NCBI RefSeq assembly: GCF_902652985.1
Contig: NC_047016.1
Location: 38,688,001-38,752,000 of the forward strand
DNA: 64,000 nt
Source of the DNA: Pecten maximus
Lineage: Eukaryota
Direction of reading: 5' to 3'
Shown: positions 431 through 30,605 of the stretch, one piece after another
Layout of the letters: each line of letters starts with the position of its first letter
Position numbering within the stretch: position 1 is the stretch's first letter
Made by a program: the position numbers and the translations under genes
The notes under the pieces: model-generated
What the model saw: the letters and a program-made list of their open reading frames with translations, nothing else
Database searches by the model: none
Told to the model about the DNA's origin: nothing

Positions 431-1184
431 ATGTATTTGCTATGAATTGTTAGGTTAGGATTTCAGGTCAGACGGTTGGCATTACAGTTGCAATGCTGTT
501 GGTCATGAGTCACTTTCTGATAGATCGTTCTATGACAATATAATATATGAATGAAATTGCATTGACTATGTGCAAGCTGCAAATTAAGGGTATGCGGGTA
601 TGATCTCATCTGAAACAACAGTGATGATTATTGTGGGTGATGGGTACATATATATATAGTAATCCGTATGATACTAAGGCTGTGCTGTGACAAGTCTCGC
701 TGTGAAGTTAGTGGATATTGTTGATTAAGATATCAATTTACATAAACTTGTTTATTTTAACACTCTCAGATGTTAGCGCTTTACGGAATCATGTGTGTTA
801 TAAACATGAAACTAAGTTGATCCTCATAATTATCAACTAGGATGACATATGCGAACGTTCCCAATTTGGCGTACTCGAATTTCCGCGCATTTCGGAATTA
901 TAACAGGGTACCCAGTGATGAAATTATTTTCGATGGAAATGGTATATAGATAGAAAGTCAATCATCGTAATGATTCCAGCGTAAAAATCACGAAAATAAG
1001 TTTATCGTCTTAATATGTATGTTTATAGTATCCGGGCCCTTTGTTATAAACATGTAGTTTATTTGGAATTGATATTTTGATAATACTGAGAAAAAAAGAG
1101 CGTTGACTGTCTTGAAGTTCACAAATGACGTCACACAGCACATGCATACTCTCTGTCTCTCAGGTAAAGATTCGAGGTGAGTGG

Positions 1185-1345
1185 TTCGAGAGCCTGAGAA
1201 AGGGGCCGGGCCGGGCTGTGCTGTCGAGACTGTGCCTTGAGCAAGACACTTTACCTTAATTGCTCTGGATTGCATGTGACGGGCCTCCCATATGTTGTTC
1301 AGTGAGGTAGTCACCAACTACTACAAGGAGAACCTGCCTCAAAAC
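1185..1345 (+). mobile_element. CORE-like SINE fragment
   Basis: TGTGCCTTGAGCAAGACACTTTACC resembles the CORE-SINE motif. Aligns by eye with 30895-31035 (GAGAAAGGGGC...TATGTTGTT..GTGAGGTA.TCACCA.CTAC..CAAGGAGA.CCTG.CTCAAAA). Confidence 0.5.
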
Positions 1346-2293
1346 GTATTTTCAGTCTGATGCCATCGTACTGTTGTAATGTCCAATAGTTACTGTTTGA
1401 TGAGATACAAATAAGTCTACAAATGGAAGGACTTTTACATATAATGTATCAGTCAGAATCAGATATCTTACATATTCGTTATTACGATATATACGTCGTA
1501 AATACGAGATAATTATCTCCATATTAAGGCTTACTACTAGCAAGTCGTTATCGTGACACGTTGTACTTATTTGTAATGAGGACATAAAATAATGCATGTG
1601 GCACTAACTTGCTTCCATAATAATGTTATCCTGATTGAAACAAACATTTCTATTGAAAAATCTCTATGACGTCAATTCATATATAGATGATTTGCGAAGT
1701 AATAAGAGACCTGGTTTTGTATAAAGATACATAACTCAAAAATAATTCACGTTAATCCGGATCTAATTGTTTTTTCATGGATTATTTTGTGTTGTGGATT
1801 TATCCTGCTGTGACAAACACAACTTCATGACAATGGGATCAACATCCGACTCTCAATAAGGATCATTCGTGCACAGAGGATTACTCCGCCAACAGGTGGT
1901 CAATACGACTGATTTCTATTTTGGACAAGTAATCCTTAATATGATATGAAACTCATAAAATGCTACCTCCAGAGAAAAAAAGATTTCCAATCGAACGTCA
2001 GACCTACGTTTGAGAACAGATTGTAAGAGTTATCACCCTGTGATCGCTGATACATATTGTATGTAGTCGGGGCCGTTTTGTTTTTGCGTTCCAAACGGAC
2101 GGACCAGTTGGACCGATGTTGTTCGTTAATGAAATAAAGACGGACCTCATGATTTTATATTGTTTTCAGACGAGCCTTGCCTGTATCAAAATTTGCAGGT
2201 CCGTCAAGGAATATGTTTGAAATATTACATTTAAAAACCGACGAACCGGATTGTCCGCATAAACGACCATGCCCCAGGTGTCGTGTTGGAAAA

Positions 2294-2410
2294 CGTGACG
2301 AAGTAATATATAGGGGAGATAACTCGTGACGAAATATTTAGGAGAGATAACTCGTGACGAAACATAAAGGGGAGATAATTCGTGACGAAAGATATTTGGG
2401 AGGTAACTCC
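2294..2410. repeat. Short tandem repeat, ~29-bp unit x4
   Basis: CGTGACGAA...GGAGATAACT repeated four times. Confidence 0.75.
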
Positions 2411-3299
2411 TAAGTCTAGGATGAAATATTATAACAATTTTATATCATTTCTTTGATCAATATGAACATGTTTATGCAAACATTTTGCTAAGAACAATCC
2501 GAAAATTACCAGGATATGAAGTCTGTTTTCATAGACTTCCAATGGATTTCAAATATCTATTCATTGTAACAGTGACCAATTTGACCCCCATGTGGTTGAT
2601 TGTAATTTCGTACAAGAGGTGATAGTTGTGAATAAGCGTAACGGACGCAGTTTCAGGAAAATTGGATGAGTTATGAAGTTGGTAGACCGAGGACCTTAAA
2701 AATCAATCTTCAGTAACAGTGACTTCATTTTTAACCTCCTGTGGTTGAAACGCGAACAAGTACAAGAGATGAAATTGTTGTGAGTAAGTGTATGAAGTTT
2801 TAGGAAAATCGGAATATTAATGACGCCGGAAAGCGAGAATGTCGACAATCTAATTATAGGAACGGTGACCTCATTTTGACTGCAGGTGGTTGAAGCGTTC
2901 GTTCGTGCAAGATAAGATAGTTGTGAGTAAGTGTATGAAATTTCTGGATAATTGGACAATTAATTAAGTCTGTAAAGTAAGGACGTCTTTGGAGCATATC
3001 CCTATATCAACTCCTCGACTCGTCGCGAGGATATTATAAAGCACTTGTGCATATTAGTAAGTAAAATACACAACCAAAAGGCAAAAGAGTATACCGACAT
3101 TCCAAAGTTAGTCGGAAATAAAGAAAAGGTCAACTGACCAAAGGTCTAGATCACTGAAACAAATGTCAATGTCAAATTTTGTATCGAGGAACATGTTATC
3201 ACATTATTTTAAAAAATGGTCAGAATTAAGCATCAAGTAAACTGACCAAATGAGAAGGCCACTGGGTAAGAGTTCAAGGTCAAGGACATTTTGTCATGA

Positions 3300-25562: not shown

Positions 25563-26369
25563 TACTAAAACACAAATATCAACAAACTAAATGATATAAC
25601 ACACGTGTTTCTTAACGTTTGATTACTTGGACCAAAGGACGTCGCGCATTTACTTCCCTAATATGAAAATATAGTTCTTGAATCCGATGGATTTCATATC
25701 ATCTGCAATGATTCTAGACTATACAAATAACGATCAGGTGTAGGTAATGATAATATCACGTGAAACGTTAGTTACCTTTATAAAAATAGTGGATAAATTT
25801 AGGTTTTCAGCGGAGTAATATATAAATACGAAAGATCAGGGCGCGACGAATTACCCAAATCTACCCAAATCTACCCAAATCCACCCAAATCTACCCAAAT
25901 CCACCCAAATCTACCTTAATCTACTATGTAAATCAAACAAAATCATACTTACAGCTGATAATTTGGGAACGTGAACTTGTTAAATCAATTTTTAGTGCAT
26001 CATTGTCGCGTAAAGCACCATGAATCGATATAATGTACACAAACACTCTAACTTCAGTAGCGGTTATCTCCCCTTATGCATATAATGTCAAGGAACAACA
26101 AAGACCTGGTTAATTTAAAGACAATTTATTACGTAGAATATTGATTATATAACAAGCAATTCGTGAAGTCGATGTATAAAAATAGTAGATTTCTACGAAA
26201 TAATTCTTAGACAAAAGTCTTCTATAATTCTAAGCAAAGCCTACATGTAAATATAAACGTCTGTTGAATGTTAAAAAATGTTAAAATCCAATTGTTACAT
26301 ACACATATAATTTTTTACCAACATTCATAAAATTACTATGTATTTAATCGGTACATTTCAATAATTTTT

Positions 26370-26555
26370 ATGAACAATACAGTCGTATCCAATGTGACAT
26401 CTCATAAACATCTTGGTGTATACTTGTCCTCTAGTTTTGACTTGGTTGACCACATTGAAACTTTCATACGTTTAGGTACACTGAGGAAACTGAAATATGT
26501 TCTTGATAGAAACTCTCTACAGACTCTATATATATCTTTCATTAGAATAAGCTGA
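26370..26555 (+). pseudogene. Fragment of a non-LTR (CR1/L2-like) reverse transcriptase C-terminal region
   Basis: VTSHKHLGVYLSS...LRKLKYVLDRNSLQTLYISFIR matches the post-RT motif typical of CR1/L2-clade ORF2. Confidence 0.65.
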
Positions 26556-26850
26556 TATTGTTTTGGATGCACTACCACAATAGCTTATATACGTATAAAA
26601 AGTAAATCTCATAATCTATTCCACATATATAAAAACCATGTTAGATACAAATACAATGCATATATATATATATATAAAAAACATACACGCTCTAAAATGT
26701 ACAAATACAATACTGTCATTGACAGTAGACATATTTCAGTTCTCACTTTAAGCAAAGTGCACCTGACGAGGTGACGAGTCTGAAATTGACTACTTATTTG
26801 TATTTACCACTAAAATGAAAAAAATGCAAAATTTATAAGTAATTAAAACA

Positions 26851-28165
26851 TATATAAGTAGACATTATAAAGACAGTTTCTACAAGATATGTATTCAGTG
26901 ACATTTACATTTAAAATATACGTTTTACGGGACACATATATAAGTAGACATTATAAAGACAGTTTCTACAAGATATGTATTTAGTGACATTTAGAGAAAA
27001 AAATATACGTTTTACGGGACACATATAAAGACAGTTTCTACAAGATATGTATTTACGGGACACATATACAAGTAGCCCGAGTTTTCTCTGGCCCTGTTAC
27101 CATGTCTGGTGTAGGGCCAGAGCGCACTACTATATGAAAACGTGGAATTATCCGACACCGTTTGGTGTCGCTAAGAATTTGGTGGATATACAATAAAATC
27201 GGGTGTGACATAACACCTACCTTACATATATGGATAAATGAGATATCTATTTACCCTGGAACACCCATTTAGTCCAATCTAGGTGGTTTATTCCGCCCGT
27301 ATAGACCCTCGCTTTACGCTAGTCAAAATTTCGTACTGCTGACCCGCCATTTTGTAAGTGACAGTACGACTAACCACCCGAATCGGAACGCAATGGACCG
27401 AAAAGACCACGTATCATTTATTGTGTTTTTCGTCTTACATTGTTTAAAATAAGAAAACTAAGCTTATTATTTCCCAAAACCTGTTATATCCAATTTAAAA
27501 ATTCATTATTTATGAATTATAAGCGGTAAAATATATAAAAATAAATGTTGTATTTTTTTTCTTTTCGCTCCATCGCGCACTGATTAGGGTAATTAGGCCG
27601 ACCGCGACCTACATGGTTAGCAATATGGCGCCGAGTCAAGTATGAAATTTTGGCTAGTGTACAACGAGGGTCTATACAGACGAAATAAAACACCTAAGTG
27701 GGACTAAAGGGGTGTTTTGGGGTAAATAGATATCTCATTTATCCATATATGTAAGGTAGGTGTTATGTCACACCCGATTTTATTGTATTTCACCAAATTC
27801 TTAGCGACACCAAACGGTGTCGGATAATTCCACGTTTTCATATAGTAGTGCGCTCTGGCCCTACACCAGACATGGTAACAGGGCCAGAGAAAACTCGGGC
27901 TAATATACAAGTAGACAATTTCAGTTATAAAGACAGTTTCTACAAGATATGTATTTAGTGACATTTACATTTAAAATATACGTTTTACGGGACACATATA
28001 TAAGTAGACAATTTCAGTTATAAAGACAGTTTCTACAAGATATGTATTTAGTGACATTTACATTTAAAATATACGTTTTACGGGACACATATATAAGTAG
28101 ACAATTTCAGTTATAAAGACAGTTTCTACAAGATATGTATTCAGTGACATTTACATTTAAAATAT
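26851..28165. repeat. 86-93-bp tandem repeat interrupted by a MITE
   Basis: GTAGACA...TATAAAGACAGTTTCTACAAGATATGTATT...ATACGTTTTACGGGACACA units at 26858, 26944, 27911, 28004 and 28097. Confidence 0.85.
27073..27902. mobile_element. 830-bp MITE with ~270-bp TIRs and 9-bp TSD, nested in the 4-kb element
   Basis: TAGCCCGAGTTTTCTCTGG ... CCAGAGAAAACTCGGGCTA; ATATACAAG at 27064-27072 and 27903-27911. Confidence 0.9.
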
Positions 28166-28587
28166 ACAGCGCATTACTCCAGAGAGCATTAGAATGCAAT
28201 GTCGACACGGCATTCATCCACATCGGAGGAAATGAAATAGCGGCAGATTCATCCCCCAAAGAGATCTTCAACAACATAGCTCAATTAATTGACCAGTTCA
28301 TCGCGTCTGGCATACGAAATGTATACATTGCAGAAATTCTGACGAGGGAGCCCAGCGCCAAGAAATGTCCAGGCCTCACAAAGATGTCATTTGACCGGCA
28401 ACGAAAAAGAATAAACCAACTTCTACAGAAGAAATATGGTAACAACTTCGTCACATTAAAAGACATAAAATACCCACAAGATTACCACACGGATAAAGTC
28501 CATCTCGCCACCACAGATACTCCAAACACCAATACGCGAATGAAGAAGTACGCATCTAGAATAAGAAGATTACTGGCCAGCTGCTGA
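28135..28587 (+). pseudogene. SGNH/GDSL hydrolase-like ORF, 5'-truncated
   Basis: AFIHIGGNEI (block III GxND-like), VYIAEILTR, INQLL and HTDKVHL (block V DxxH). The N-terminal GDS block is absent, and the ORF start lies in the tandem repeat. Confidence 0.7.
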
Positions 28588-28598
28588 AGACACCAAAC

Positions 28599-28664
28599 GG
28601 CCCTTTTCAGGGCCATCCAAAACGGTCCTTTTCAGGACCAACACAAATGGCCCTTATTAGGGCC
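28599..28664 (+). terminator. Three tandem histone-type 3' stem-loops
   Basis: GGCCCTTTTCAGGGCC (28599-28614), GGTCCTTTTCAGGACC (28624-28639) and GGCCCTTATTAGGGCC (28649-28664). Each has a 6-bp stem, a 4-nt loop and A-rich flanks; period is 25 nt. Confidence 0.85.
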
Positions 28665-29278
28665 AACAATATTTTTAAAAAAGTGCCAAGCACGCCTCGA
28701 ATTTACGCAAAATCTAGTGATATTTATTTTTACAACAAAACCTTTAACCAATTATTGAAAATTCCATTTGATTTCCTTTAGAAAAAAAATATATATTTAT
28801 TTCCGAAAATGAACTATATTATCGCAATTACATCCATATAAATATATTGTATAGGTTCAATAGTATTTAGTAAAGTTTTATAGGTTCCATAGTATTTAGT
28901 AAAGTTATATTATTATTATCCTCCAAAATGAAGAGCATGACATAATAACAAAACAATGTTCAAAACACATATATGTTACAGAAAATGCATGGCAATATGA
29001 TAATACACTTGGTAAACATAAATGGTATGATTATTAGTTTAAGTTTGAAAATGAGCAAAATTATAGATTATTTTGAAGAACTAGATTTGAATATGATGAT
29101 CATCGTACAGGTCAAGCATATACTTTATATGAGATATTGTATTGAACTGTTCTAGTATATCTGTTTCCAATGAATAAGCCATATAGCCTCCCAGTAAAAT
29201 GTGAACTAACATATATTCTGACAATTAATGCAAAAATGAAATAAATTAAATATCAGAAATAGATACGATTGCACACAT

Positions 29279-29373
29279 AAACAATTTTTTTCCAATATTC
29301 TTGGTTAGGAAACAATTTTTTTCCAATATTCTTGGTTAGGAAACAATTTTTTCAAATATTCTTGGTTAGGAAA
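29279..29373. repeat. ~31-bp tandem repeat x3
   Basis: AAACAATTTTTTTCCAATATTCTTGGTTAGG repeated. Confidence 0.85.
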
Positions 29374-30032
29374 TGTACCATCATCTAGTGACAGTTTTAA
29401 GAATACAAATAATTGATACTTTTTAACATATCTGGTATATAACCATTTTGAACACATTCATTTGTTTCATACAAAAAACATCTTAAAATAAAAATGTTAC
29501 TGGTTAAATTACTTCTTTTCATTCTACACAACCTACCTAGAAACAATAGTTTTTTTTATATCTATGTATGCTTCAATAGATGTCCATCCAAGTACGGAGG
29601 TCAAGATCTATAGGTTCAATAGTATTTAGTAAAGTTCTTAAAAGGGAGGTAACCCCTACTTAATTTTGATTCTTAAACCAATCGACAAAGACCGTACGTA
29701 ATAATTATTAAAAAATGTCAAAAACATCGTTTTGATACGTTATTGATGTAATATATATTGATTTGTGTGGAATATAATGGTAGATTTGGGTAGATTTGGG
29801 TAGATTTGGGTGGATTTGGGTAGATTTGGGTAGATTTGGGTAATTCGTCGTGCCGAAAGATCATGGGACATAACCCAATTAGCACTTCCTGTTTATTTTG
29901 GAAATGGCTCGATGGAGACGGAAAATAGACGTCGCTGTCAGATACACTAGAAGGTATATTTGTGCCGAATGAATGGGTCAGTGTTGCAAAACTTTATAAA
30001 TAACAGTTTTATGGTGATTGAATGACTCAAAT

Positions 30033-30605
30033 ATGAAATTAGGAACTGTTACGCCTCCTGTTTTCCTCCTTGTGTATCTGCTTCAAATACTAGTGACAGG
30101 AAGTAAGGCCACAACACTGCGATGTGAAACTCTGCTTCTTGGTCAGTACACATGCAGAGAACCTGAAATAGATATAGACACACAAAGTGCAAAGGGATGC
30201 AGAGAAAACAGAACGGTCCTTGTTCCGTGTATGCCAGCTGAAGAGATAAATTGTATCGGATTAGATGGACAAGCTATGACTTACAATGGAACAATTGTTG
30301 GATTCTTAAAAGAAATTCCTTGCAGATGGACCAATGGCTACTCTTTTGAGACCTCTTTGTTATTATCTATTTTTCTTGGAATGTTTGGGATCGACAGATT
30401 CTATCTCGGATATCCTGCTATTGGTTTACTAAAATTTTCAACACTTGGATTTTTCTTCCTTGGACAGCTTGTGGACATTATATTGATTGCTACACAAGTA
30501 GTTACTCCATCTGATGGATCAGACTATGTCATTGACTACTATGGGGCTGGTTTAACAAAGATTATCATGGACAAATTCACATTTGTTAAGCCCCCCGATT
30601 CTTAA
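30033..30605 (+). CDS. TM2D1: TM2 domain-containing protein 1, single coding exon
   Basis: Signal-peptide-like N-terminus from ATG 30033, Cys-rich ectodomain (LLLGQYTC..P.ID..TQ), then TM2 domain LLSIFLGMFGIDRFYLGYPAIGLLKFSTLG...PSDGSDYVIDYYG, characteristic of the TM2D1 subfamily. Confidence 0.92.
   Translation: MKLGTVTPPVFLLVYLLQILVTGSKATTLRCETLLLGQYTCREPEIDIDTQSAKGCRENRTVLVPCMPAEEINCIGLDGQAMTYNGTIVGFLKEIPCRWTNGYSFETSLLLSIFLGMFGIDRFYLGYPAIGLLKFSTLGFFFLGQLVDIILIATQVVTPSDGSDYVIDYYGAGLTKIIMDKFTFVKPPDS

Follow-up and report, generated by a model that had tools for sequence, protein, structure and literature searches.

A histone-type 3'-end signal downstream of an SGNH hydrolase gene in Mutator-like transposons of scallops

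Our analysis of a 64-kb stretch of scallop DNA, referred to as a whole as the window, revealed the remnant of a transposon-borne SGNH hydrolase gene that is followed by the complete 3'-end signal of the host's histone genes. The module has the layout stem-loop, 11-13 nt, AAAAAGTNCC, 5-8 nt, CNCTCGAA. Directly observed were how the locus is built, its location in a transposon, the match of the three boxes to those of host histone genes, and the persistence of these boxes over deep divergence and in more than one genus. It is probable that a transposon captured a histone 3'-flank long ago and now uses it to form poly(A)-independent mRNA 3'-ends by SLBP/U7-type processing. An earlier note on this DNA had proposed such processing for a mobile-element-associated gene, and this overall interpretation is supported at the sequence level, with cleavage, SLBP binding and U7 pairing as its presumed steps. 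The features of the locus are listed in Table 1.

Table 1. Features of the SGNH transposon and its 3'-module in the window
Feature	Position	Strand	Remarks
Left TSD copy GAAAGATCA, 9 bp	25830-25838	.	Identical 9-mer at 29855-29863
Mutator-like (Rehavkus-like) TIR transposon, non-autonomous, internally deleted	25839-29854	+	Carries SGNH remnant; ~4 kb
Left TIR	25839-25936	+	Starts GGGCGCGACGAATTACCC, then 10-nt subterminal repeats (TACCCAAATC)n
Minisatellite, 86- and 93-nt units	26848-28167	.	Split by palindromic high-copy repeat 27073-27902
5'-truncated SGNH/GDSL hydrolase CDS	28158-28587	+	Retains block III (GGNE) and block V (DKVH); I and II lost
SL1 GGCCCTTTTCAGGGCC	28599-28614	+	GGCCCU UUUC AGGGCC; 5' flank CCAAAC, 3' flank AUCCA
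SL2 GGTCCTTTTCAGGACC	28624-28639	+	GGUCCU UUUC AGGACC; compensatory C-G to U-A, stem pair 3
SL3 GGCCCTTATTAGGGCC	28649-28664	+	GGCCCU UAUU AGGGCC; hairpin at histone-like distance from downstream boxes
Purine box AAAAAAGTGCC	28677-28687	+	12 nt after SL3; candidate histone downstream element (putative U7-pairing site)
Third conserved box GCCTCGAATTTACGCA	28694-28709	+	Counterpart of CNCTCGAA in host histone genes
Right TIR	29758-29854	-	Homology of five other copies stops at 29855
Right TSD copy GAAAGATCA	29855-29863	.	9/9 match to left copy

Downstream of the SGNH reading frame, three perfect hairpins with a 6-bp stem and a 4-nt loop follow each other at an exact period of 25 nt, the first beginning 11 nt past the TGA (28585-28587). 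Using one pattern covering all three for both the count and the shuffles, 3 matches were obtained in the 64-kb window versus 0.02 expected, and 3 or more matches occurred in 0 out of 100 shuffles. All three hairpins have G-C pairs at the stem base and U at loop positions 1 and 3. The number, spacing and distance from the stop codon given in the earlier note were confirmed (hairpins at 28599, 28624 and 28649), and so were the differences it described between the copies. These are a compensatory double change at stem pair 3 of the second copy and substitutions only at loop positions 2 and 4 in the third relative to the first. The purine run that it reported about 12 nt after the third hairpin was found at 12 nt and is not incidental, since it matches the box and spacing of host histone H3 and H2A/H2B-type genes.

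The Rfam model Histone3 (RF00032) has a gathering score of 34 bits, and at this threshold there was no match in the whole window. In a permissive search of 501 nt, SL3 with its downstream sequence reached 31.7 bits (E 2.7e-07) and SL1 27.4 bits (E 1.1e-05), both just under gathering. Sister copies at C14:7208943 (35.3 bits) and C3603:8912 (40.0 bits) exceeded it, both with the stem-loop immediately 3' of an SGNH match. The check with this model suggested beforehand thus gave scores above gathering for sister copies and below it for the window. The window hairpins are preceded by AAAC or AAAT, whereas in the Rfam consensus AAA adjoins the GG. In the minimum-energy fold of the isolated RNA, SL1 pairs with SL3 around SL2 instead of three local hairpins being formed, because the stems are palindromic.

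The same three boxes with the same spacing are carried by tandem histone clusters of the host (5.2 kb; genes assigned by PF00125). Pattern searches found GGCCCTTTTCAGGGCC in the histone genes, followed after 11-13 nt by AAAAAAGTTCC or AAAAAGTCCC and after another 5-6 nt by C[TA]CTCGAA. The purine box is AAAAAAGTTCC in H3, 11 nt past the stem-loop, and AAAAAGTCCC in the H2A/H2B-type genes, 13 nt past it, and CNCTCGAA is located 3' of the purine box in both gene classes. A 75-nt module of the SGNH copy L046 aligns with the histone 3'-flanks at 84% identity over 55 nt, and because of this alignment we regard the module as probably captured. The histone link is based on this alignment and on the pattern searches, not on BLAST with the window sequence; SL3 and its downstream stretch matched 13 places including the window itself, each of which is a copy of this module, and 0 out of the 13 were located in a histone cluster. 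As had been remarked earlier, no histone ORF is evident here: the PF00125 matches are all located outside the window, and the ORF upstream of the hairpins encodes an SGNH hydrolase. Captured histone 3'-UTR fragments unique to this locus had been named as a finding that would speak against the proposal. The module does align with histone 3'-flanks, but it is family-wide and ancient rather than locus-unique. The host genome encodes an SLBP gene, and a search of the genome with RF00066 found no U7 snRNA. The genome also contains dispersed stem-loops scoring 38.5 bits.

The mechanical ORF preceding the hairpins (28135-28587) starts with an ATG at 28135 inside the minisatellite and matches the GDSL-like family Lipase_GDSL_2 (E 9.6e-06). 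Its score of 26.7 bits and those of intact copies (31.1 and 32.6 bits) all lie just below the gathering threshold of 32.9 bits; homologues have precomputed PF13472 matches. Since homology to the intact copies begins only at 28158, the window ORF is devoid of blocks I and II, an internal deletion at this position having truncated it. Intact 181-aa SGNH copies with the catalytic blocks are present elsewhere in the genome. The window copy is a dead, deleted relic, as anticipated from its missing catalytic GDS block and the presumed existence of an intact gene elsewhere. Among 11 family members, S9, G34/G35, N64, D151 and H154 (blocks I, II, III and V) are invariant, and the family reads as an esterase under constraint. 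The AlphaFold model has an SGNH fold (pLDDT 87.1, pTM 0.85), and the top Foldseek matches were PAF-acetylhydrolase, TesA and GDSL-like esterases (E from 2e-06, probability 1.00).

The TIRs of the surrounding element are 97 nt long and 90% complementary. In copy L019 homology begins exactly at 25839; this copy shares both termini and is flanked by a separate TSD with an 8/9 match. The right edge of the minisatellite is the deletion junction that removed the 5' part of the SGNH gene, and a longer copy (L064) contains 2.6 kb at the minisatellite region that are absent from the window. There is no MULE transposase in the window element. In at least 8 places of the genome, an SGNH gene has a MULE transposase match about 0.4-7 kb away; a 100%-identical sister copy on C3 adjoins such a match, and further ones are located near SGNH in L068 and in Pinctada (L071). 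L062 and L064 have PHD ORFs on the same strand as the transposase, and a PHD ORF was also found in L067. The description of the ORF as transposon-borne is borne out by the TIRs with a 9-bp TSD, the start of L019 at the left terminus and the MULE transposase beside relatives.

Several other assignments were rejected. A CR1-like LINE ORF1 does not agree with the TIRs and TSD and with the lack of ORF2/RT in the unit, and the RT-like pieces nearby are only short nested fragments (26370-26555 in the window; 2023-2292 in L029). A hydrolase ORF of a YR-retrotransposon (Ngaro/DIRS) was discarded because TIRs, TSD and MULE transposase were found. A YqaJ exonuclease ORF and its neighbour ORF in L064 are absent from other copies and were not counted as parts of the unit; they look like a nested insertion.

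Conservation of the module extends over considerable divergence of the encoded proteins, as the SGNH subfamilies that carry it share only 40-56% mutual identity. The hairpins start 11-26 nt past the stop codon on the sense strand in all these subfamilies. All three boxes are kept in five subfamilies with spacers equal in length and unrelated in sequence, the inter-box spacers and the stretch between stop codon and hairpin having diverged beyond recognition. In the Yesso scallop (assembly GCA_002113885.2), which represents a second scallop genus, the same module is located 3' of its SGNH gene, and a contig from a further species has the canonical GGCTCTTTTCAGAGCC, then AAGAAAGAACC. Two stem-loops with the same downstream boxes are also located at the end of a second ORF from a transposon (L025-L027), which is unrelated to the SGNH gene. 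When 14 hairpins representing 8 lineages are compared, 98.8% of the stem cells are paired, and double compensatory changes occur at two stem pairs; the hairpins behave in this comparison as a conserved RNA structure would. A HIRAN domain considered for the ORF of L025-L027 was rejected, with no Pfam match even at E 10.

In the protein tree, the rows with intact or decayed stem-loops form one clade (support 82/91), except for 1 row of unsettled placement. The earlier note had suggested checking whether stem-loops follow SGNH stop codons across molluscs. They do so in this one clade, including the second scallop genus, and not in the SGNH relatives from several other species, among them pearl oyster and bay scallop, where the module is missing. 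Several module-less distant relatives carry poly(A) hexamers instead. Copies with a stem-loop have no AATAAA/ATTAAA within about 200 nt of the stop codon, except L066, and a hexamer within about 105 nt was found in 4 copies without stem-loop and in 1 with a decayed stem-loop. Most subfamilies have a single hairpin; tandem hairpins number 2, 3 (window family) or at least 6 (L046), and this multiplication could be plain minisatellite growth.

The public runs consist of assembled contigs of depth 2-8 that carry neither RNA-end nor strand information, and several of the runs may be DNA. In the sole certain RNA run, thin contigs fall within the ORF (28218-28503), and the interval 28524-29867 has no contig. 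In better-covered runs, which may be DNA, one contig crosses the hairpins and reaches 28708.

From these data we infer a capture event, followed by cleavage involving SLBP and U7 and by coupling of expression to the cell cycle. The SGNH esterase would be a stand-alone accessory gene of diverse Mutator-like cut-and-paste transposons in scallops. The ancestor of one clade presumably gained a histone 3'-flank comprising stem-loop, spacer, purine-rich downstream element and CTCGAA box, and the element would have retained this flank as the 3'-end signal of its SGNH gene. SLBP would bind the hairpin or hairpins of the pre-mRNA, and the U7 snRNP machinery would cut a few nucleotides past whichever hairpin is closest to the purine box; for the window family the predicted site is at about 28668-28669. 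The predicted product is a non-polyadenylated mRNA that in the window family ends in three SLBP sites. Its expression may follow the regime of histone mRNAs and be high in S phase; oocytes and early embryos would store the transcripts, which would be degraded once replication stops. This is a plausible period of activity for a DNA transposon. We see about even chances for the broader reading that scallop Mutator-like transposons hijacked histone pre-mRNA processing. They would produce non-histone SLBP/U7-processed mRNAs, some with several SLBP sites, that are expressed in a replication-coupled or maternal manner, and their module would track the histone signals of the host over evolutionary time (GGCCCU with AAAAAGUNCC in scallops, GGCUCU with AAGAAAGA in another host).

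Alternatively, the module may be passive cargo, i.e. a histone 3'-flank captured in the manner of Pack-MULEs that has no function and resembles histone genes by origin only, or because gene conversion with the numerous histone copies refreshes it now and then. MULEs are known to take up pieces of host sequence (PMC6446971), the alignment with histone flanks and the many SGNH relatives without module would fit, and young copies decay freely, SL1 or SL2 being broken in L037, L039 and L055-L057. Repeated gene conversion from histone genes could also mimic conservation. However, functionless cargo would hardly keep its boxes while the spacers diverge, between proteins of such low identity and in two genera, or reside always on the sense strand at a short distance from the stop codon. 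The occurrence at the same position behind an unrelated ORF and the scarcity of poly(A) hexamers where the module is present also argue against it, and we regard this explanation as rather unlikely.

The periodic arrangement in L046, where the hairpin and a CTCGAATTACGCA box recur at least 6 times with a period of 43-46 nt some 200 nt ahead of the TIR, could instead point to an element acting at the DNA level. Hairpin and CGAATTAC-containing box could constitute a subterminal site for transposase binding or hairpin formation or a transcription stop that protects the terminus, with the histone likeness being secondary. Subterminal repeats are typical of these transposons, and the box has CGAATTAC in common with the TIR terminus GGGCGCGACGAATTACCC. 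Yet CNCTCGAA and the purine box are also found 3' of bona fide histone stem-loops outside transposons, the module of the window family is 1.2 kb away from the TIR, and its position and strand are fixed relative to the stop codon of the ORF rather than to the terminus, which makes a DNA-level role quite improbable. The tandem arrays in the window family and in L046, together with the retention of U1 and U3 in 3 out of 3 window loops, could also point to a sponge. Multi-hairpin transcripts, cleaved or not, would sequester SLBP and disturb the host's histone supply or its assembly of chromatin for the benefit of the transposon. This is very improbable given the single hairpin of most subfamilies, the low copy number and RNA signal, and the conservation of downstream boxes that a sponge would not need.

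Replication-dependent histone mRNAs are described, for example in PMC4604434, as the sole mRNAs of the cell whose 3'-end is a stem-loop and not poly(A). Our search of the open-access literature found no precedent for a transposon or a non-histone gene with a histone stem-loop. Because a complete host histone 3'-end signal is located 3' of a transposon SGNH gene, this SGNH family may be the first non-histone gene family that makes histone-style tail-less mRNAs. If true, it would be a natural exception to the histone-only rule, indicating that the SLBP/U7 pathway can be co-opted, and these transposon genes would be under-represented in RNA-seq data from poly(A)-selected libraries. The module would offer a ready test of which parts of the signal are sufficient on a foreign ORF, including the newly noticed CTCGAA box that is shared by the scallop histone genes. 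In relation to transposon biology, it suggests how expression could be restricted to S phase or else to oocytes and early embryos. In the annotation of bivalve genomes, stem-loop matches are not to be equated with histone genes.

Compared with the histone 3'-signal (RF00032 and HDE; SLBP/U7), the module shares the 6-bp stem with GG/CC base, the 4-nt loop with U1 and U3, the A-rich 5'- and AC-rich 3'-flank, and the purine box 11-13 nt downstream followed by the CTCGAA box, the whole starting within about 25 nt of a stop codon. In contrast, the upstream ORF in the window encodes an SGNH esterase within a DNA transposon, and hairpins of SGNH modules are often in tandem, which is no feature of histone genes. 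In addition, the scores of the window copies fall slightly short of the Rfam threshold, and processing is predicted here.

Small PAF-AH-like SGNH esterases are known from other mobile elements. ORF1 proteins of CR1/L2-like LINEs have esterase (SGNH) and PHD domains (PMC3905857, PMC4120745), and the fish texim SGNH genes are mobilised by Helitrons (PMC4021074), where no histone-type stem-loop is mentioned. The scallop elements resemble them in carrying such an esterase with a PHD finger nearby. Unlike in the LINEs, the esterase is a separate ORF of ~180 aa in a TIR transposon, with the PHD on the other strand and no RT in the unit.

MULEs with a second gene comprise maize MuDR with mudrA/mudrB, yeast Mutyl with mutB and Arabidopsis Hiun with vanB/vanC, and the Repbase group Rehavkus is characterized by a 9-bp TSD, a PHD finger and a minisatellite before the TIR (PMC6446971). 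The scallop elements share with these the long TIRs with subterminal repeats, the 9-bp TSD and internal minisatellites, and their presumably autonomous relatives encode a MULE transposase and a PHD-finger ORF on the strand opposite to the small second gene. Their likeness to Rehavkus refers to these traits. An SGNH hydrolase as second gene is listed for no MULE group in PMC6446971, and the second gene of the scallop elements differs further in having a histone-type 3'-module. As in Pack-MULEs, a host-derived fragment, the histone 3'-flank, is situated between MULE termini. Instead of a recent, decaying piece of coding sequence, however, this fragment is a long-conserved non-coding processing signal joined to a gene of the element.

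Three histone-type hairpins follow the stop codon of the window's SGNH/GDSL hydrolase ORF, and their length, their exact 25-nt spacing and their distance from the stop, as described in the earlier note, were confirmed by the sequence. The 25-nt period was also called by Tandem Repeats Finder. A degenerate pattern fitting all three hairpins matched these sites and no others in the 64 kb (0.02 matches expected from shuffles). Variation among the copies likewise agrees with that description: compared to hairpin 1, stem pair 3 of hairpin 2 is doubly changed (C-G to U-A), and in hairpin 3 the changes are confined to loop positions 2 and 4. The Rfam model Histone3 detected hairpin 3 with its downstream sequence (31.7 bits) and hairpin 1 (27.4 bits), but both scores are slightly below the gathering score of 34 bits, at which no hit passed in the whole window. 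As free RNA, the hairpin stretch folds strongly (z = -6.1). Hairpins 1 and 3 are predicted to pair mutually around hairpin 2, because the stems are palindromic.

Two boxes 3' of the hairpin are common to all subfamilies of the gene, with differing spacers. The first is of the purine type AAAAAGTNCC and lies 10-13 nt past the stem, the second, CNCTCGAA(T)TACGCA, another 5-8 nt downstream. A 75-nt module taken from L046, another SGNH copy, shares 84% identity across 55 nt with tandem histone clusters of the host, at sites about 100 nt past PF00125 matches. Host histone flanks were derived from pattern searches printing the matched letters. Their boxes match those of the window, and the purine run reported past the third hairpin is therefore identified as the host histone downstream box at host spacing. 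At the sequence level, the whole host signal is present on the transposon gene, which is more than a look-alike hairpin. SLBP is encoded in the host genome; a search of this genome with the Rfam model did not find U7 snRNA. In host histone genes, a C[TA]CTCGAA box is located 5-6 nt past the purine-rich downstream element (e.g. C1729:1476-1517 and C1729:4157-4200). This box, of which we know no description, may either extend the U7-pairing site or act as a signal in its own right.

Features of the window and of the host genome (G000)
Feature	Position	Strand	Description
ORF stop codon TGA	28585-28587	+	read from sequence
Hairpin 1	28599-28614	+	16 nt; begins 11 nt past TGA
Hairpin 2	28624-28639	+	16 nt
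Hairpin 3	28649-28664	+	16 nt
TIR element carrying the SGNH relic	25839-29854		4,016 bp; TIRs and target duplication
Window module			GGCCCTTATTAGGGCC-AACAATATTTTT-AAAAAAGTGCC-AAGCAC-GCCTCGAA
Host H3-type genes			GGCCCTTTTCAGGGCC-ACCAAAATTCC-AAAAAAGTTCC-ACTTG-CTCTCGAA; pattern search
Host H2A/H2B-type genes			GGCCCTTTTCAGGGCC-ACCCAAACTCCTC-AAAAAGTCCC-AATGAA-CACTCGAA; pattern search
38.5-bit Histone3 hits, G000	C3:29511705, C4:24020573, C14:11983858, C14:31338614, C19:22410930, C9:25120192, C14:24669479

The window ORF (28135-28587) matches GDSL-like lipases. Its homology to other copies starts no earlier than 28158, so its initial codons derive from a 93-nt minisatellite. L064, a longer copy with 2.6 kb at the window's junction position, encodes an intact 181-aa SGNH protein. 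Thus, the window copy is a relic with an intact gene elsewhere, as had been supposed. The Ser of G-S/D-S, the block II glycines, the block III Asn and the block V Asp-x-x-His are invariant in 11 family members, and the AlphaFold model of the protein (pLDDT 87) structurally matches PAF-acetylhydrolase, TesA and GDSL esterases. Hence, the enzyme family is real and constrained. Over 100 sites in the host genome match the protein, and the family is large (1,625 representative clusters, E up to 0.001). Its closest named proteins are from Mizuhopecten, Argopecten and Pinctada, and the assignment of the host to the scallops is based on them. LINE esterases have been proposed to act on lipids or at membranes (PMC3905857).

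In each fetched SGNH copy the stop codon was placed and the downstream sequence scanned. The window's own subfamily has three hairpins, a subfamily at 55% protein identity has one, and three subfamilies at 39-46% identity have one, one and at least three. Wherever present among subfamilies, hairpins begin 11-26 nt past the stop on the sense strand; in some copies they are recognisably decayed and in a few they are absent. Two SGNH-linked modules exceed the Rfam threshold (35.3 and 40.0 bits). When 14 hairpins representing eight lineages were compared, pairing was kept at 98.8% of stem positions, with a double change at each of stem pairs 3 and 4. A further perfect histone-type hairpin (L042, 168-195) lies about 1.3 kb upstream of an SGNH gene, and the ORF fragment before it ends in a block V-like DGVHL motif.

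The expectation that hairpins follow the stop codons of homologous genes held for the host subfamilies and for the Yesso scallop (GCA_002113885.2; hairpin 22 nt past the stop, purine run and CTCGAAAAACGCA), but the downstream scan found none 3' of SGNH relatives from Pinctada, Argopecten and several further species. A contig of one further species carries the canonical GGCTCTTTTCAGAGCC 21 nt past the SGNH stop, then AAGAAAGAACC, and a decayed version occurs on a contig adjoining a MULE transposase. In the protein tree, rows with intact or decayed hairpins form one clade (support 82/91), bar one unresolved row, with one hairpin loss inside it. In this small sample, the roughly 200 nt that follow the stop contain no AATAAA/ATTAAA in hairpin copies except L066, and a hexamer occurs within about 105 nt of the stop in four hairpin-less copies and one decayed-hairpin copy. 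Two hairpin-less Pinctada relatives adjoin a MULE-domain gene and a Transposase_21 gene, respectively. In the latter case (L073/L074, Pinctada imbricata, GCA_033119305.1), the neighbour is a divergently oriented 975-aa gene whose domain is Transposase_21 and not MULE, so that more than one superfamily of DNA transposons may share the esterase gene.

The module is not restricted to SGNH genes. Three dispersed copies (L025-L027, about 1499-1969, minus strand) contain a frameshifted, unclassified ORF unrelated to SGNH, without any Pfam match even at E 10. Two hairpins, then AAAAAGTAACC and CCCTCGAA, mark its end, which makes it a second transposon-like gene sharing the 3' module. Seven dispersed Histone3 hits, all of 38.5 bits, lie outside histone clusters; for five, a MULE transposase match is located at a distance of 1-7 kb.

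That the ORF is transposon-borne was substantiated by 97-nt TIRs, which consist of subterminal 10-nt repeats, by a 9-bp target duplication without mismatch (GAAAGATCA) and by a second element copy (L019), whose homology begins precisely at 25839 and whose own duplication is 8/9. The MULE transposase of L068, a related contig of another species, yielded 65 matches in the host genome. At least eight of these are located about 0.4-7 kb from SGNH genes, mostly on the opposite strand, and one adjoins the sister copy on C3, which is 100% identical to the window across ORF and hairpins. PHD-finger ORFs lie on the same strand as the transposase. Inside the minisatellite, a palindromic block (27073-27902) has 112-nt arms with 100% and 153-nt arms with 89% complementarity. 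Summed contig depth in public runs reaches about 19,800 at 27852-27935, which is thus part of a very high-copy, SINE- or MITE-like repeat. A 61-aa ORF (26370-26555), which by eye resembles the C-terminal part of non-LTR reverse transcriptases, recurs at the equivalent place in L064 (3539-3724) and was therefore nested in the transposon before the copies spread. Another mobile element has probably inserted in L064 at 869-3059, where a 127-aa ORF precedes a 335-aa ORF with YqaJ/viral alkaline exonuclease domains; both ORFs are absent from the window. About 160 nt past the right transposon end, a 195-aa ORF (30018-30605) begins that is TM2-domain-like by eye.

The simplest history is that a MULE once captured a histone 3' flank, which was joined to the esterase gene and then kept. 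We argue for function because the boxes have outlasted changes in the spacers, in the stretch between stop and hairpin and in over half of the protein residues, and because position and strand of the module relative to the stop codon are kept. Passive cargo renewed through gene conversion has lower odds. The same holds for a DNA-level role close to the terminus and for an SLBP sponge. Both touch on L046 (minus strand, about 1000-1350), where the first complete module is followed by a tandem array (period 43-46 nt) of six or more units, each a hairpin with CTCGAATTACGCA box. About 200 nt beyond this array the TIR of L046 starts, which has subterminal repeats of 11 nt and GGTAAATCGACGCGCC as terminus; its end lies about 570 nt past the stop of the SGNH gene.

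A complete, correctly spaced and host-matched signal would fit 3'-end formation of the histone type. The hairpin would be bound by SLBP and the purine box by U7 snRNP, and a cut a few nt past the stem would leave an RNA without poly(A) tail, which in the window family would bear all three hairpins. We infer that the pay-off would be replication-coupled or maternal expression. In the one certain RNA run, thin contigs are confined to the window ORF; better-covered public runs, one contig of which spans the hairpins, may be DNA.

Parts of the histone literature state that histone mRNAs are the sole mRNAs of this kind, and in the open-access literature searched we found no report of a transposon or other non-histone gene with histone stem-loop and downstream element. 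The novelty is the combination, as the processing machinery and the transposon superfamily are each already known. An SGNH second gene is absent from the list of the MULE survey PMC6446971, unlike in the scallop elements, which in their 9-bp target duplication, PHD finger and minisatellites resemble the Rehavkus group tabulated there.
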